Below are positions 12,845-31,800 of a stretch of 64,000 nucleotides of DNA, piece by piece. The translations under genes were made by a program, and so were the position numbers. The notes under the pieces are model-generated. The model was not told the DNA's origin, did no database searches, and was given only the letters and a program-made list of their open reading frames with translations. Each line of letters starts with the position of its first letter. Within the stretch, counting starts at the first letter, position 1. Source of the stretch: Tubulanus polymorphus (lineage: Eukaryota > Animalia > Nemertea); NCBI RefSeq assembly GCF_964204645.1, contig NC_134033.1:2004131-2068130 (forward strand). Reading direction: 5' to 3'.

Positions 12845-16097
<3,253 letters not shown>

Positions 16098-17799: not shown

Positions 17800-18163
17800 T
17801 ACATACAACACTAGAACCCCCCCCCCCTGTACATGCAACACTAGTACACCCACCCTGTACATGCAACACTAGTACACCCCCACCCCCCTGTACATACAAC
17901 ACTAGAACCCCCCCCCCCCCCCTGTACATGCAACACTAGTACACCCACCCTGTACATGCAACACTAGTACACCCCCCCCCCCCCTGTACATACAACACTA
18001 GTACACCCCCCCCCCCCTGTACATACAACACTAGTACACCCACCCTGTACATACAACACTAGTACACCCCCCCCCCCCTGTACATACAACACTAGTACAC
18101 CCACCCTGTACATACAACACTAGTACACCCCCCCCCCCCTGTACATACAACACTAGTACACCC
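17800..18163. repeat. Minisatellite CTGTACATRCAACACTAGTACA-C(n) with variable poly-C spacer
   Basis: About 11 tandem units, mostly alternating CCCACCC and long C runs. Confidence 0.9.
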
Positions 18164-18406
18164 AAAGCCTGTTATATATCAATCAATGTAATGCGCTATT
18201 CAAATAAACATTGTATAAAAATTTACGCTATTTCTCGTTTGAAGCACATGATAACCTAGTTTTACGCACAGCAGACGGTTACACAATATCCACAAAAAAA
18301 ACTATTGAATTCAGTTGTGATATGAACGGAGAGCGTGTGATCTGTAGAGGTTAGTGATTTAATAATACATATCTGTGAACTACTCATTCAGCGGGCATCA
18401 ATCTGT

Positions 18407-19150
18407 TGACTGAAACCTGCAGCCTGAAACCTGCAGCTCTGTAGACTGAAACCTGCAGCCCTGTAGACTGAAACCTGAACCCCTGTAGACTGAAACCTGA
18501 ACCCCTGTAGACTGAAACCTGCAGCCCTGTAGACTGAAACCTGAGAAGGGTACAGTGCCAGGCTGACGAGGCGCAGGGTTCAGGCTGAGAGGGGTACAGT
18601 GTCCAGGCTTGGAAAGTGCAGGGTCTAGGCTGAAGGGGTGAAGGGTCTAGGACGGGGGAACAGGCTAGCAGGGGTACAGTGTCCATGCTGAGAGGGGTAC
18701 AGTGTCCAGGCTTCAGGGAGGTGTACGGTCCAGGCCGAGGATGGTGAAGGGTCCAGGCCGAGGAGGTGCAGTGTCCAGGCCGAGGAGGTGCAGGGTACAG
18801 GCCGAGGACGGTGCAGGGTCAAGGCCGAGGATGGTGAAGGGTCCAGGCCGAGGAGGTGCAGTGTCCAGGCCGAGGAGGTGCAGGGTACAGGCCGAGGACG
18901 GTGCAGGGTCAAGGCTGAGGAGGGTGAAGGGTCCAGGCTGAGAAGGGTGAAGGGTCCAGGCCGAGGAGGTGCAGGGTACAGGCCGAGGACGGTGCAGGGT
19001 CAAGGCTGAGGAGGGTGAAGGGTCCAGGCTGAGGAAGGTGCAGGGTCCAGGCTGAGGAGGGTGCAGGGTCCAGGCCGAGGAGGTGCAGGGTACAGGCCGA
19101 GGACGGTGCAGGGTCAAGGCTGAGGAGGGGATGAAGGGTCCAGGCTGAGA
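18407..19150. repeat. Adjacent 22-bp minisatellite and G-rich compound array (units of about 20 bp)
   Basis: CTGTAGACTGAAACCTGAACCC units at 18407-18545, then (CAGGCYGAGGAGGTGCAGGGT)-like units; explains ORFs at 18384-19196. Confidence 0.9.
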
Positions 19151-19276
19151 GGGGATCATGTAGGGAACAGGCTGAGTGAATGAGTAAAGGGTTCACACAG
19201 CAGATTACTACATCTGTTTTTAGAGAGTGATCATCACGTTAATAGTTTATACAGTATTCTATACGAACACGCTGTG

Positions 19277-19284
19277 TATATAAG
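19277..19284 (+). promoter_or_regulatory. Candidate TATA box of the AADAC-like gene
   Basis: TATATAAG about 95 nt upstream of the ATG at 19373. Confidence 0.45.
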
Positions 19285-19372
19285 CTATAGGATCGTGGAA
19301 TGGAACGACTACATATTTCCAGGGTCGACCAGACACAAACCCTTACAACAATAGACCAGACGAGAGTCGGCA

Positions 19373-22300
19373 ATGATGTCTAAACTAGAATCCATTGTAG
19401 TTAGCGGCGTATTCATGATTTCGATGATCTGGTATTTGACGGCAGAATCAAAGGTAAATCAACGTGTAACTTCTTAAACACTACTTTGGCCCGGATCTCG
19501 GAATATCTTCACTTCTCTACGTCCTGCGTGGATATTGTGAAACTAAAGCGCAGTCCGATTTCTTATTTAGAGATTTAAGCAGTTCAATGATTTTCTAACA
19601 AGTCTAACTGGGTCAAGGAATAAATCCGCAAAACAGGCCCCGAAGACATCATAGATTTTAAAATGTAATTTCTTTCGCAGCAAACTGGATTTTTCGGTTT
19701 CGTTTATTCGTTGTTGTTGTTGCCGTCTGTATTGTTGTTGGTTGCCGCGGTTATCGTCTGCTGCCCGCGCGATTTACCGGCAGACGGACTGAAAGATCGG
19801 TGGAAAATACGAATAATACTGACGATTCGTAACATCATCAATCTTGTGGTAAGAATTGATCGAACAAAATTATGAATTCCCTTCCCTTTTAAGGGCACAT
19901 AGATTTAGGGGCTTCATTGATGGGGGGACAAAATAATCACTGGAAATATTTTGAAATTTGTCGGTTGTTACCACGGTTTCCATGCAGGGAAAAATAAATC
20001 CCGAATACCCAGATTACCTGATCTTTCCAATTTCAGTGCATCTACACCAAAGTGCAGTGTATAAATCGGTGATGCACTTTGCAAGTACACGGCACTGCCG
20101 TATACTGGTTTTATTCGCGATTAGTTATTCTCTCCATTGAAAGATGGCAGCACTTGTCAAACATAATACGTGCGAAATGTGAGTAACCTACAATACACTG
20201 CACCACGGCGTAGACACACTATAGTGAATAAATGATATAAAGATTCCAAGTCCAAACTCTAAAAATTTCAAATTATCTCCAGCACTTTCGGGTACAAATG
20301 AGGCAGCACTGTAAGGATTAACCCCTTTCCATCGATAACCTATTATAAACGGACGATTAGGTAGTTTTATATCTATAACAACAGGGCGGTGTTGTATGTT
20401 ATTTCGGATTTGCATGTTACACGACGTCTACGGCGCGTATGTACAACTATCTGCTGTCGATCGGCCAGTCGTACCTGGGAGTAATAGTGAGTACATGTAT
20501 CTTAAGTCCTTAAGATGTTAAAGTTAAGACTCACTGGTCTACGTTAAATCACAAGCCATATTCGAATTCGTTAATTTTTTCAGGAGTTCGACGACGCAAT
20601 CGAAGGTGTCAAAGTGAAGATTTTTAAGCCGACAGAAGTTGAAGATAGCGATGAGTTGATACCAGGAGTTGTGTACATTCACGGCGGAGGTTGGACTAGC
20701 ATGAGTACAGGTCAGTCATTTCAAAATCATGTCAGACATGACATTGAAATATTTCAACTTGGTTTTTAATTGAAAGGACATCCGATGGCCTAGCTCGGAC
20801 AGTTTTAGTAATGTCTATATTAACATTGCCTTAGAAGACGTCAGGTGGCATAGCTCGATCTGTTTTGGCAATGTCTATTTTAGTTCAATAGTAGTGACTA
20901 ATGATACACCGCGCTGTGGTTTAGATGCAATAAAGCGGTATGCCTGTAATACACCGCACTACGGTGGAATTGTCTAAATTTTCAAATTAGAACTTTCTGC
21001 ACTGAAACCCCTAGGTTTACGTCAAACCCAGTCGCGTTGTACCTTGCTAGTGTATTAATAATACGCCGCGCTGTGGTTTAGATGCAATAAAGCGGTATGC
21101 CCGTAATACACCGCACTGCGGTGGTCATCAAATGTAAATCATTTTCTGAAAACAGAAACGCACAGACGATTGACGAGTTTGTTGTGCAAACATCTGAACA
21201 AAATAGTCATCTCAATCAGGTAGGTGACATCGAGCAACTACGAGCAACTATTTCAGCACGGACGTTTTAAAGAAACGCTTGATGATGGATGAATCAGTTT
21301 TCATCGTTGTGTATTTCAGTTACAGCGTCGTACCCGAGGTACATTTTCCGCAACCGGTCGACGAATGTTTGAAAGTGACGAAATATCTACTGAATCACGG
21401 TGACCATAAATATCGGATCAAACGAGATGATATCATCATAGCCGGTGAGATATCTCAATAAATCCCCCCTATGACATCATAGTTATCTATTATTCAATCC
21501 TTCTGGAAAAGATCAGATTGCCTAATGGATCGACTATACCCTTCGAGAATAAATGACTGCCTTCCCCCTATGACATATCACTATGTTTATCAAAGAGATC
21601 CTCTCCTCGAATAGATGGCTGCTTCCATGAACTCCCCCTATGACATCATCAAATTGATCTAACAAATTGATCTAACACCCGATCCAGAATTATGGCTGCC
21701 ACCATCTAACCCCCTATGACATCATCAAATTGATCTAATGCCCCATCCACAATGGATTACTGCCTCCATCAATCCCCCTATGACATCATCAAAAGATTTT
21801 GAAACAAATATTGTCTGATAAGGAAATCTTGAATTGTGTATTTGATGTAGGAGATGACGTTGGAGCCAATATGGCCGCCGTGATTGCGCAAGAGTTACGA
21901 AACGTCGACGATGACACGCCGAGATTAACGAAACAGATTCTCATCGACCCTGTTCTGCAATTCTTCGATTTCGAACTGGCGTCGCACGTCGAGAACGATC
22001 GTTACGATTTGTTGGCGTCGTCGCGGTCGCTCGCGCACCGGTTCCTGTTCTACGTCGATCGCTCGCCGTTTTACGCCACTGAAATATTGCGCAATCGCCA
22101 CGTCGACGCGGCGGATCGCGAAAAATATGGATACCTCGTCGATCGCGGATTATCGACGACCACGCCCGAACCGCGAATTCACGAATATACCCCGCATTCT
22201 TATCAGGATTTAGTGTATTATTACCATGGCGATGCGACGCCGGGTCAGATCCGTCCGCCCGTTACGCGACGATTAACCGACCCGGTCGAAAACGATGCGA

Positions 22301-22575
22301 TCGTCGCCGCCGATTTACGCGCGGCGGTACTTGACCCGCGAGTCGCTCCGCTCATGCGCGACGACCTCGACGGCTTACCGCCGGCCGTTATCGTGACATC
22401 GCGGTACAGCATCACCCGCGACGACGGTTCGATCTACGGCAGACGGTTAGAATCGGCCGGTGTCAAGGTCGTTTCGACGGAATTCGAGCAGACGTTTCAC
22501 GGACACCTCGTTTACGCCCACGTTCTGGAAAGCGCTCGCGACAACGCGATGAAACTCATCGAATTAATTCGTTAA
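19373..22575 (+). CDS. Arylacetamide deacetylase-like (AADAC/NCEH1, HSL family) alpha/beta-hydrolase with non-canonical triad, 463 aa, N-terminal membrane anchor
   Basis: Exons 19373-19453, 19681-19848, 20385-20486, 20584-20710, 21156-21219, 21320-21444, 21851-22575 (1392 nt, phases consistent). Motifs VYIHGGGW, YSVVPEVHFP, IIIAGDDVGANMA, QILIDP, VAPLM..LDGLPP, RYSITRDDG, TFHG. Confidence 0.88.
21460..21795 (+). repeat. CCCCCTATGACATCA / ATGGCTGCC intronic repeat (copy 2)
   Basis: Five CCCCCTATGACAT subunits filling most of the last intron of the AADAC-like gene. Confidence 0.85.
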
Positions 22576-22605
22576 TTAATTCCGTTTCTTATCAATAACT
22601 ATGAA

Positions 22606-22904
22606 TTAACCCTCAACACGTCTCTACACCGCAGTGCGGTGTATAAATCAGTGGACTTCTGTAGTACACTATGTCATGGTGTATGGATTTTGTCAGTACG
22701 TAATTTGTCTTTATCTCTATTGAAAGATGGCAGCACCTGTCAAACAAAGTGAAATATTAGTAACTAACGATACACCACACCGCGGTGTAGACGCACTAAA
22801 GCGATATGCCCGTTATTCAACGCACTGAGATGGAATTTTTCAAAAATTCAAAATTATCTCCAGCACTTTTAAGGGTATGAATAAGTCGGCCCTGAAAGGG
22901 TTAA
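22606..22904 (-). mobile_element. piggyBac-like MITE just after the AADAC-like stop codon
   Basis: TTAA-CCCT...CTGAAAGGG-TTAA; reverse orientation relative to 41531-41817. Confidence 0.8.
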
Positions 22905-23659
22905 TAAAATCATATACTTTTAAGTTGATGATTAAATGAATATTGTCATGGTAACAATGTAGTTTTACATTGTCAACTCCTTTTTTTGAACTACAGACCC
23001 CAGACATTTGCTGAAAAGTTGGTTCGAGTCGCCGCATTTTGCACTCGCTCAAAAAAAATGCTGAACGACAGATTTTCTATGATACGAAAAAAAAAAATCA
23101 CAAATTACTTTCGTGTATTATTCCTAAAAACTGCGGAGAAGTCGGAAAAATGTCGGAAAATTTCCTGTGAATATATCGCGATGATTTCAGATGAAAAATA
23201 TATTTTAGCTTTTGTAAATGTAAGTATGACTTACAAAATTACGTTGGCTTTTTATTCAGCGTTTAAAAACGCGCAAATATTTTACTGAAAATAGAATCGA
23301 TTTCTAACCCAGAACTCCTTATCGTCCTGTCCTTTTTTTCCTTCACGGAGGAGAACACGCTTCCAAGAGGTGGCGCTTTTCAGCTTTAAAAATAATCCAT
23401 CCACATCGACGAGAATTTCAAGAATTCTTTATCCTTCGGTTTATTATAACTGTTTGTAAGAAATACCAGAATTAAACACTTTAAAGTACTTACACAGTCA
23501 CACATTGTCGGAGGTCGGCTTCGCAAACAGGAAAAATTATCCATTTCTCATTTGAAAGATAGTTTACGATTCTCCAGAACTGCTAGCTTTTTTAGAGACT
23601 AAATGCGAAAAACAAAACAGTTCCAGAATTCACCAACACGGCATTTCAGAGTCAACTGG

Positions 23660-24060
23660 TGACTATATTCGAACACAAATTTGTATGTTTTCCAGTCTCG
23701 ATTCGACTCAAACAATCCGCAATGGGATACGTTTAATAATTCCACAGTAAAGCGGTAGTCATTTGAGGACTTCAACTAAACACCAATTTGACCATTTTTC
23801 AGTCCAGATTCGACTCCATCAACCATCCACAGAACTCGCAGGTCAATCGCAATGAGACGTGTTCATTAATTCCACATATGATCAAAATGGATGGAGAGTC
23901 ATTCGATGAACACAAATTTCATAGTTTTTTCAGTCCGGAGTCGACTCAATCGCGTTGAGACGTGTTCATTAATTCACAGTAGCAAAATAGATGGAGAGTC
24001 ATTCGATGACTTCATCTGAACACAAATTTCATAGTTTTTTAGTCCGCAGTCGACTCCATA
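23660..24060. repeat. Degenerate tandem repeat of about 110-130 bp (3-4 copies) downstream of the MED11 stop
   Basis: Recurrent GTCATTCGATGA..AACACAAATTTCATAGTTTTT..AGTCC..CGACTC blocks. Confidence 0.7.
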
Positions 24061-28800: not shown

Positions 28801-31800
28801 AAAACAAATTTTTTTTAAAACTGAAGAAACTTTTTTATCATGAAAATTCACGTTTTTTTTTTTTTTCTGTTTTGACAGTCGATCGGATTCAAGGGAATTC
28901 TGTTGTTCGGAACGGACGAACAAAAGCGGAAATATTTACCGAAACTAGCGACCGGTGAGCAGTTCGCCGCGTTCGCGTTGACGGAACCGAGCAGCGGCTC
29001 AGACGCTAGCGTAAGTTTTCATGAAATTTTTTAAAGTAAAATATTTCGGTTTCGGCGACCTCCCTGCAACTCCTTGATTCCTTTAAAACTCCTTCTAAAC
29101 TGAAAATGTTTTTGAAGGTTATTAAAACTCCTTCAATAGTACGATAACCGCACTCAAACGTGGTGAACAGATGATTAGATAAAAAGCCCACTATTTACAA
29201 ATTAACGACAATGATCTCTACTGTGAGATCAAAACGTCGTGTTTTTACATTTTAGATTGTTTCAAATAATAAATTCTCGATTTTAGATTTCTTTTAATTT
29301 GTAAATAGTGGGCTTTTTATCTTATCTTTTAAAAAAACTCCTTCAAGTTTGAGAAATAGGCAATAAGAAATTTTTGTCTATTTCGTAGTTGTACAGTAAA
29401 CTACACTTAAATTGGTACAGTTTGGATCTGTTTTTACCCCATTTGGCAGTTACTGAATTAGAAACTGAGTTTAGGTTGTGTTAAGGATAATCATTTGCTT
29501 ACGAAACCAACTGAATTAACAGTTTACTGAGATAAACACACTAGGCCTATAGTTCCGATTCAGGAGAATTCTGCAGACGCTTCCTCAATCTGAAAATTTT
29601 CGACTTGAAAACTCCTTATTTCCAGGAATGACTGATGCGGAGTTCCCTGCAAAATTTATTTCCCCATGTTTTGACAGTATAAGCCCCATTTCTATTTGGA
29701 AAAAAATAATCATTAAATACTTGGGAAAGGCTTGAGAATTTTGAATTCATATGAATATGTGTAGTTTTAAATAAAATATTTTTTAAAGTACAATCTCTCT
29801 GCTTCGTCGAACTGTGGATTATGTTATTCATGAATTTTTGTGGAGGGATTTGAATTCATGAATATAATTAAGAGACACCAGATTTTGAGTCTAGGATATA
29901 TACTATCAGTACTCGAAATAAGCTGCCATGCTTAATAAAGTGTATAAAGGCAATATATTTTTATCAATCTGCTTGGAACAATAAAATGCTGTAATATTGT
30001 CTATGAAAGTGATTTGAAATGGAATTTAAAATGTAGAACATAGTTGACATAACTGTGCCAGGGGTCGTTGCTTTCAATTCTGGTTAACCAATACCGGAAA
30101 GTGGTGGAGATAATTTAGAAATTTTTAAGAATTCCACCTCGGTGCGGCGCATAAAAGGCACGTACCGGTTTAGTGCGTCCTACACCACAGCGCAGTGTAT
30201 CATTCACTACGTTTGACAGGCGCTGCCATCTTTCAATAGAGATAAAAAGTCTAAAAAATTACTAAAATCATTGCGGTGTACTAGTGAAGTCCATCAACGA
30301 TTTGTACGTCGTACTGCGGTGTAGACGCAATGAAACTCCGTATTTAGACCCACTCAACTCGTGGTATCTCTTATCAGGGTTCTTTTACCACGATAAGGGA
30401 AGAAACTTGGACAAGTTCCCACTAAAGATCTGATCAGGGAGTATTTTGTCTGGGAAATGTCTGGGTATTTGCATACCCTGATCCGTGAGAACCCTTGAGA
30501 TTATCTTAAACATGAATCAAGGAATTTTCGGTTAAAGGTAAAAGTATTAGAGAGTTATGGATTCCTAGAAGAACTCTTTGCAGGGTCCGATCTAAGGAAT
30601 GAAAGCCACTTGCCCGGGGGGGGGGGGGGGGCAAGCATTTCTGAAATTTAGCTTGCCCCTTCAAAAGCTACTTGCCCTACACAGGCAGTCCGATTGGTGA
30701 CACTCTCATCCGTTGTATCGGGTTGGAAAAAAGCATTGTGACGTAAAATTGCACTAGCCCAGGGGACAAGGAATAATGATAAACTACCCCGGTACTTGCC
30801 CTGGTGAGAATATACTTATCCCGGGCAATCGGACAAGTGCTTAGATTGGACCCTGCTTTGTGTGACAAATTTGTTTTTTCCTCCATTTCGATAAGACTGA
30901 AGTATTTTCACCGTATTTTTTGTTGTTTTGCAGTCGATCCGTACTAGAGCCGTTCTGTCGGAAGACGGCAAACATTACGTGTTGAACGGCAGTAAAATCT
31001 GGATCAGTAACGGAGGAATCGCTGAAGTATTCACAGTATTCGCTCAGGTAACAAAAAAACACAGAAATTTAAATGGCACCAGGTTCCAGTTTTATGAAAA
31101 AAAGTTCAACTCGAAGTTTGAATTAAGAGTTACTCTTAATCTTTGCTTCTAGCTGCTATTTTTAGTTAGTGGATGTTTTCAATGACTTCGCCGTTTTTGA
31201 AAGCTTAAACTTTTTAACGAATCTGAACCCAGGGTCACCATTAGTAAACCACAATCCGTTTTGTGACAACAAAAGGCTTGATATGGAGAGAATACCACAA
31301 TGACTTAAGTCCAAAAATGTTTCCCAGAGCTGGTAGTGTTCACTATGTTTCGACTTCATTCTAAAAGTCATCTTCAGGAATACCGAACCTTGTGATAAGT
31401 CTTGAATTTTATACGTCGACGTTTTTCAGACACCGATGAAAGATCCGAAAACCGGCGAAACTAAGGACAAAGTAACGGCTTTCATTGTTGAGCGCGGGTT
31501 CGGTGGAGTGACCAGGTAGGTGTAGGAGATTTTTGATGGGAATTTGATCGGGGAGAGGGGGGCTCGTTGTAAGACAACCAGCTGTACCCGGTCACAGGCT
31601 TTAAAACCAAGCCTAAACCAGATGACACGTCAAGTACAATGCAAGGCCAGAAACTAGACTACAAGGGTTGATGATGGGGTAGCATGGATCTCAATGTGAA
31701 AAAACTTAATTTTTATTTTCAGCGGTCCTCCTGAGAATAAGATGGGCATCAAGTGTTCAAACACGGCCGAAGTCTATTTCGAAGATGCAAAAGTTCCCGT

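Follow-up and report, generated by a model that had tools for sequence, protein, structure and literature searches.

A seven-exon gene on the forward strand of the 64,000-nucleotide stretch of Tubulanus polymorphus DNA analysed here (the window; gene at positions 19373-22575) codes for a genuine protein, a paralogue within the AADAC/NCEH1 branch of animal hormone-sensitive-lipase (HSL; family IV, Abhydrolase_3) esterases, in which two of the three catalytic triad residues have been replaced. The reading that we favour, and to which we attach a probability of roughly 0.55, is that its product is a selectively maintained, membrane-anchored non-esterase (a pseudoenzyme), which would bind a ligand or a partner rather than hydrolyse it. 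The protein corresponds to RefSeq XP_074657520/21/22 ("arylacetamide deacetylase-like [Tubulanus polymorphus]", 463 amino acids, from a 16.5-Mb chromosome record), and is referred to as P0001. The assignment to the AADAC/HSL family, which had been proposed in an earlier reading of this DNA (the original prediction), is borne out by Pfam: exon 7 alone matches PF07859 (Abhydrolase_3) with 61.3 bits (cutoff 25), exon 6 covers profile positions 37-76, and the precomputed assignments for P0001 are PF07859 and PF20434.

Residue equivalences were taken from HMMER alignments to the solved family IV esterases 5LK6, 3WJ1, 1JJI and 8W98. In these alignments, Asp225 of the GDDVG elbow falls on the catalytic serine of the family motif GDSAG, and Ser409 of the YSITRDDG segment falls on the catalytic aspartate, as the original prediction had stated; the HGGG loop and the catalytic histidine (His439) were likewise found to be intact. 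The protein therefore lacks the catalytic serine of GDSAG and the catalytic aspartate of D-x-L-R-D, and retains HGGG and the histidine. The six paralogous terminal exons of the same genome always encode the serine as AGC or AGT and the acid as GAC or GAT, which upholds the proposal that each change took two substitutions: both replacements require two transitions, passing through GGC or AAC. The remodelling of the two loops comprises Ser225 to Asp, Ala226 to Val, Gly228 to Ala, Leu230 to Met, Asp409 to Ser and Leu411 to Thr, while Asp224 (immediately before the elbow residue) is kept together with the HGGG loop, His439 and the N-terminal membrane anchor. Across 234 aligned homologues, the nucleophile column holds Ser in 187 sequences, Gly in 27, Asp in five, Gln in two and Trp in one; the acid column holds Asp in 231, Glu in two and Ser in one, this single Ser being that of the target.

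Since the serine nucleophile and the beta7 acid are both gone, the protein would have no serine esterase or amidase activity. If a pseudoenzyme is taken to be a protein that has lost at least one triad residue and has kept its fold under purifying selection, the target would belong to this class, with two of its three triad residues changed. The fold, the HGGG loop, Asp224, the histidine and the anchor are retained, and the nucleophile and acid loops have been remodelled. In the mechanism that we envisage, the preserved pocket, made more negative by Asp225 and Asp255 beside His439, would accommodate a ligand or a partner. Both the loss of esterase activity and the binding role are what we infer from this pattern of retained and replaced residues.

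Evolution of the target has been accelerated but constrained. In a tree of full-length animal homologues, its terminal branch measures 1.45 substitutions/site against a median of 0.47, which makes it the second longest of 112, and its root-to-tip distance ranks fifth of 112. The target deviates at 12 of the 54 columns that are conserved at 80% or more (median 4), and the other top deviators at such columns are the broken-triad proteins P0067, P0047, P0179 and P0082. It nevertheless keeps 42 of the 54 columns (78%), against an overall identity to the consensus of 37%. Furthermore, the elbow and acid loops hold a disproportionate share of the changes at conserved columns, with 7 of 15 columns altered there as opposed to 5 of 39 elsewhere (Fisher p=0.012). 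This pattern of constraint, together with an intact open reading frame (ORF) and intact splice sites, indicates that selection persisted while the catalytic loops were specifically remodelled, and argues against a decaying pseudogene.

Neutral drift at 1.45 substitutions/site would have eroded the conserved columns, and we consider it improbable that the gene was recently inactivated, i.e., that it has had no function since its catalytic loss and is merely undisrupted so far. The 463-codon ORF and all six GT/AG pairs are intact, RefSeq models the gene as coding, and exon 7 keeps the composition of functional paralogues, rich in CpG and in GC at third codon positions (GC3), unlike the introns of the target. 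What speaks for decay, besides the very long branch, is the isolation of the protein. No orthologue with more than 40% identity was found among 1.84 billion representatives, where the best non-self match is 39% identical; the check for orthologues that keep GDDxG together with YS, which had been proposed at the outset, consequently returned none. A word-index search with the target yielded nothing between 31% and 100% identity, and its cluster has a single member. Its paralogues are 38-40% identical to it, a distance at which synonymous divergence (dS) is saturated. A further point for decay is the lack of transcript-derived fragments in the protein collections: a search with P0001:140-300 returned none that crosses the exon 4-7 junctions, a result that is uninformative because the paralogues are also without T. 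polymorphus transcript-derived proteins.

The gene model itself appears sound. The exons add up to 1392 nt (463 codons and a stop), the introns all have GT/AG borders, and RefSeq gives an identical model, in agreement with the uninterrupted seven-exon frame that had been predicted. P0001 was used as the full-length reference, and the genomic exons were searched one by one; each exon, translated in its own phase, is a consecutive piece of P0001, and exon 7 is identical to it along the full exon in an exhaustive HMMER search. A different splice that restores GDSAG had been named as the circumstance that would overturn the prediction, but the six frames of 18000-24000 contain no alternative exon coding for G-x-S-x-G or GDS. 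Moreover, the phase-1 acceptor of exon 7, within the Gly codon of the elbow, is common to all six paralogous terminal exons of the genome. It is very unlikely that the feature stems from erroneous assembly or base calling, or from a mistaken splice that masks a canonical GDSAG exon, in view of this junction, the lack of another elbow-coding stretch in that interval and the identity with the RefSeq model; two substitutions would be needed for each catalytic change, and the elbow departs from the family motif at four of its seven residues.

The base composition of exon 7 (GC 0.56, CpG observed/expected 2.1) is characteristic of the terminal exons of this family on chromosome 9 (21851-22575 and L002-L004), which have GC values of 0.56-0.61, GC3 values of 0.64-0.77 and a CpG observed/expected ratio of ~2. 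The GC content of the window is 0.40 and that of exons 1-6 of the target is 0.38-0.49, and this GC enrichment is not seen in paralogues on other chromosomes.

The AADAC/HSL family regularly includes members without the elbow serine. On a tree of 182 non-redundant sequences of animal homologues, Asp at the elbow arose five times and Gly four times, and Ala, Cys, Thr and Asn were never seen at this position. The four other cases of Ser-to-Asp, three of them (P0095, P0101 and P0047) in different animals, all carry a GDDAG elbow and an unchanged acid site. P0095 has HGGG, Asp and His intact and derives from an intron-less 1.8-kb contig that is probably a transcript; P0101 is a partial sequence in which the beta7 Asp and the His are kept and the HGGG region is not covered; P0047 has kept the beta7 Asp and lost the His; and P0192, the X1 isoform that RefSeq gives for an AADAC/NCEH1-like gene of T. 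polymorphus, keeps HGGG, the beta7 Asp and the His. Ser-to-Asp at the elbow is a recurrent theme, and it is the acid loss (1 of 234) that is the truly unusual feature of the target.

Because Ser-to-Asp recurs with the acid site unchanged, the two changes in the target do not form a coupled "reciprocal swap", and this part of the original prediction, along with the inverted Asp-His-Ser triad derived from it, was not sustained. In such a triad, Ser409 would be the nucleophile, acting via His439, and Asp225 would polarise the histidine. The sole argument for this arrangement is that a Ser, a His and an Asp formally occupy the three sites, and we regard it as highly improbable: the oxyanion hole, formed by HGGG and the backbone NH that follows the elbow, and the pocket lie on the elbow side of the histidine, and the buried beta7 turn has neither (PMC7034887).

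The gene that encodes P0192 lies ~280 kb downstream of the window on the minus strand (G000:C9:2304410-2314434; L002-L004/L006/L008/L010). Its exons 1-6 are common, and they are followed by three alternative terminal exons in tandem, each of which has an elbow, acid, histidine and stop of its own. Terminal exon A (GDSAG/HDCLRDEG/YHGD) is used by isoform X2 (P0003) and terminal exon C (GDDAG/YDVVADDA/FHQD) by isoform X1, while for terminal exon B (GDSAG/YDVLRDDA/FHDD), the ORF of which is intact, no annotated protein was found. The gene models predict, then, that Ser- and Asp-elbow isoforms are produced from one gene. A common origin of the Asp of the target with that of exon C was considered and rejected: the A/B/C clade, with a support of 98 in the Shimodaira-Hasegawa-like approximate likelihood ratio test (SH-aLRT), excludes the target, and parsimony yields 4-5 origins. 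The Asp of the target is thus independent.

The glycine elbows include an animal AADAC-like clade with a GDG(S/A)G motif (SH-aLRT 100), comprising P0061, P0066, P0074, P0179, P0180 and their clusters, with many Logan, ENA and JGI contigs. HGGG is conserved in this clade, position IV (see below) holds Asn, and Asp and His are kept across several clusters. From its sequences, it looks like a conserved Gly-elbow pseudoenzyme lineage.

An AlphaFold2 model of the target, built with 112 homologues, reached a predicted local distance difference test score (pLDDT) of 86.6 and a predicted template modelling score (pTM) of 0.85. Family IV esterases (3WJ1, 2C7B, 1JJI and 1EVQ) make up all of its best Foldseek matches, with target-normalised template modelling (TM) scores of 0.75-0.84. 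The two hydrophobic N-terminal segments noted in the original prediction are seen in the model as helices 2-24 (low pLDDT, 47-57) and 30-54. The second of these, followed by PRDLPADGLKDRWK, matches the single anchor of the paralogues, among which P0003 has the same anchor and PLPDDLEEPWK; hence it is exon 1 that adds an extra helix. The Tyr/Pro-rich insertion that had also been pointed out is present, but its pLDDT is below 50 at residues 323-351 and 355-357 and it has nearly no secondary structure, with one three-residue helical turn at 340-342. In the model, it is probably a lengthened, disordered cap loop rather than an ordered element. The possibility that this insertion supplies a Tyr clamp like that of epoxide hydrolases was rejected as unsupported at a pLDDT below 50.

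The alignments reveal a further replacement in the target, which the original prediction had not noted: where strand beta6 ends, the pair Asp255-Pro256 takes the place of Tyr177-Pro178 in SshEstI (3WJ1), and Asp255 corresponds to the LIYP tyrosine of 5LK6 and 1JJI. This site, termed position IV and defined on 3WJ1, touches both the nucleophile and the histidine, and serves as the catalytic acid in four alpha/beta-hydrolase families, including those of LinB (Asp108/Glu132/His272) and pancreatic lipase (Asp176-Pro177) (PMC7034887). In EstE1, the equivalent Tyr182 forms part of the active-site wall and touches the His loop (PMC12502808). The position IV column of the 234 homologues holds Tyr in 159, Asn in 30, Val in 17 and Asp or Glu in three. 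The only homologue that lacks the beta7 acid, namely the target, thus has, at the site of the alternative acid, an acidic residue that is rare in the family. The other two acidic residues at this position belong to P0147, whose triad is canonical, and P0108, whose triad is not listed as deviant, and none of P0095, P0101, P0047 and P0192 has Asp at position IV.

The acid could have been relocated to give an Asp225-His439-Asp255 triad, and the target might be an Asp-nucleophile hydrolase, a reading that we consider possible though doubtful. Asp225 would attack the substrate (predicted to be an electrophile such as an epoxide or an alkyl halide), His439 would activate water and Asp255 would replace the lost beta7 acid; the resulting Asp-His-Asp arrangement would have the topology of LinB (Asp108-His272-Glu132) and the acid placement of pancreatic lipase. 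The target would then combine a Ser-to-Asp nucleophile with an acid moved from beta7 to beta6, a LinB-like triad on an HGGG scaffold, and might tentatively be viewed as a natural snapshot of a serine esterase scaffold on its way to Asp-nucleophile chemistry. The alignment of Asp255-Pro256 with position IV of 3WJ1 (PMC7034887) and the scarcity of acidic residues there (3 of 234, including the sole member without a beta7 acid) are in line with this proposal, as are the retention of the oxyanion loop, Asp224 and the histidine, and the fivefold occurrence of Ser-to-Asp, with at least P0095 and P0192 keeping HGGG and an otherwise intact Asp/His pair. On the other hand, the oxyanion motif is HGGG rather than HGxP, Val226 and not Trp follows the putative nucleophile, and the Tyr-rich cap insertion is of low confidence and probably disordered. 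The side chain of an Asp at position IV may, in addition, be too short to reach N-delta1 of the histidine. P0108 and P0147 are also acidic at this position, in the latter case next to a canonical triad, and Asp255 could also be a chance change, for which the long branch leaves ample room given that Tyr to Asp takes a single transversion.

Several observations weigh against the binding role that we favour. An enzyme that is still catalytic would likewise keep HGGG, Asp224, His439 and the pocket scaffold, all of which the target has. Serine has been replaced by Asp in five independent lineages and never by Ala, Cys, Thr or Asn, which hints that Asp itself may be selected at the elbow; the recurrence of GDDxG, in at least one case as a RefSeq alternative last exon beside a GDSAG isoform, suggests the same. 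Asp255 occupies the alternative acid site. No orthologue was found among the 1.84 billion representatives. Literature searches on GDDAG, AADAC pseudoenzymes and non-catalytic elbows returned nothing relevant. Even so, among the three readings that were put forward in the original prediction, the non-catalytic membrane-anchored binder fits best with the long branch, the 12 deviations at 54 conserved columns and the lost acid; the Asp nucleophile keeps a lesser place, and gains Asp255 as a candidate partner, whereas the inverted triad is set aside.

Table 1. Exons and active-site features of the AADAC/NCEH1-like gene, in window coordinates.
Feature	Position	Strand	Remarks
Exon 1	19373..19453	+	Residues 1-27; start codon and extra N-terminal hydrophobic helix; GT donor; matches P0001
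Exon 2	19681..19848	+	Residues 28-83; canonical AADAC-type membrane anchor, then P-x-D-L-P...W-K
Exon 3	20385..20486	+	Residues 84-117; AG/GT borders; matches P0001
Exon 4	20584..20710	+	Residues 118-160; HGGG oxyanion motif at 20680-20691
HGGG within IHGGGW (residues 149-154)	20680..20691	+	Oxyanion motif intact
Exon 5	21156..21219	+	Residues 160-181; AG/GT borders; matches P0001
Exon 6	21320..21444	+	Residues 181-223; YSVVPE replaces YRLAPE; 3' end inside elbow Gly codon
Exon 7	21851..22575	+	Residues 223-463; elbow, strand beta6, cap, acid loop, His loop, stop
Asp225 (GAC), GDDVG elbow (GGA GAT GAC GTT GGA)	21856..21858	+	Aligns on catalytic Ser of GDSAG
Asp255 (GAC), QILIDP, C-terminus of strand beta6 (position IV)	21946..21948	+	Family Tyr replaced; candidate relocated acid
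Tyr/Pro-rich insertion, residues 323-357	22150..22254	+	Cap region between beta6 and beta7
Ser409 (AGC), TAC AGC of YSITRDDG, after beta7	22408..22410	+	Aligns on catalytic Asp of YDPLRD
His439 (CAC), TFHG	22498..22500	+	Aligns on catalytic His (after beta8)

The gene is surrounded and interspersed by repeats. An element of ~180 bp that resembles a miniature inverted-repeat transposable element (MITE), contains TTGAAAGATGGCAGCAC and has inverted, related ends is present in intron 2 (20040-20220), directly after the stop codon (22610-22800) and, on the minus strand, near 30220; related fragments occur in intron 4 (~20890-21130). Intron 6 holds, at 21663-21793, a 64-bp tandem repeat (2.1 copies) and further copies of CCCCCTATGACATCAT. 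Upstream, a GC-rich minisatellite with 23/45/91-bp periods spans 18541-19153 and ends ~220 bp before the start codon; the long repetitive ORFs on both strands of that interval are due to it. Further upstream, an open frame at 12845-13327 (+) resembles, and may be, the initial exon of an LCMT1-like (leucine carboxyl methyltransferase) gene.

The target bears on the question of how Asp-nucleophile alpha/beta hydrolases (dehalogenases and epoxide hydrolases) originated, from or alongside Ser-nucleophile esterases; we know of no natural intermediates within one family. With the target and the four GDDxG members of separate origin, the AADAC/NCEH1 family, itself well studied, offers proteins on which this can be tested. 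Should they be active, they would represent new chemistry for this family; should they be inactive, Asp would be the preferred "parking" residue of dead elbows, and an invertebrate class of membrane-anchored pseudoenzymes would be added. As regards annotation, no esterase activity should be read into the name "arylacetamide deacetylase-like" that the target bears.

Comparison with the AADAC/NCEH1 (AADACL1) esterases shows that the target shares their fold, the HGGGW loop, the Asp before the elbow residue and the catalytic His, as well as the N-terminal anchor with P-x-x-L-P...W-K behind it, a cap inserted between beta6 and beta7, and an intron that interrupts the elbow Gly codon. It differs from them in having Asp for the Ser nucleophile, Ser for the beta7 Asp, Asp for the Tyr at position IV and YSVVPE for YRLAPE, in its extra N-terminal hydrophobic helix and in its longer, low-confidence cap loop. 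Pancreatic lipase resembles the target in the Asp-Pro at position IV/IV+1 (PMC7034887) and in a non-acidic or vestigial beta7 residue, but it has kept its Ser nucleophile and belongs to another family. P0192, P0095, P0101 and P0047 share the elbow Asp with the target within the same family, and differ from it in that they arose independently and keep the beta7 Asp.

The hallmarks of Asp-nucleophile hydrolases are an HGxP oxyanion motif, a Trp after the nucleophile, and a pair of cap Tyr residues or halide-binding residues. The target has in common with LinB/DhaA-type dehalogenases and epoxide hydrolases the elbow Asp, the His after beta8 and an acidic residue at the end of beta6 (Glu132 in LinB); it does not belong to them by sequence, and it has HGGG and not HGxP, no such Trp and no ordered cap Tyr pair. 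Finally, the alpha/beta-hydrolase fold is also found in non-catalytic proteins, such as plant GID1, an HSL family member that has lost its His, and the neuroligins, in which Ser is replaced by Gly. As in the target, GID1, the neuroligins and the GDG(S/A)G clade combine a conserved fold and pocket with a broken triad and with evolution that is accelerated yet constrained; in them a single residue is lost, as a rule to Gly or to a hydrophobic side chain, whereas the target has lost two, to Asp and Ser.

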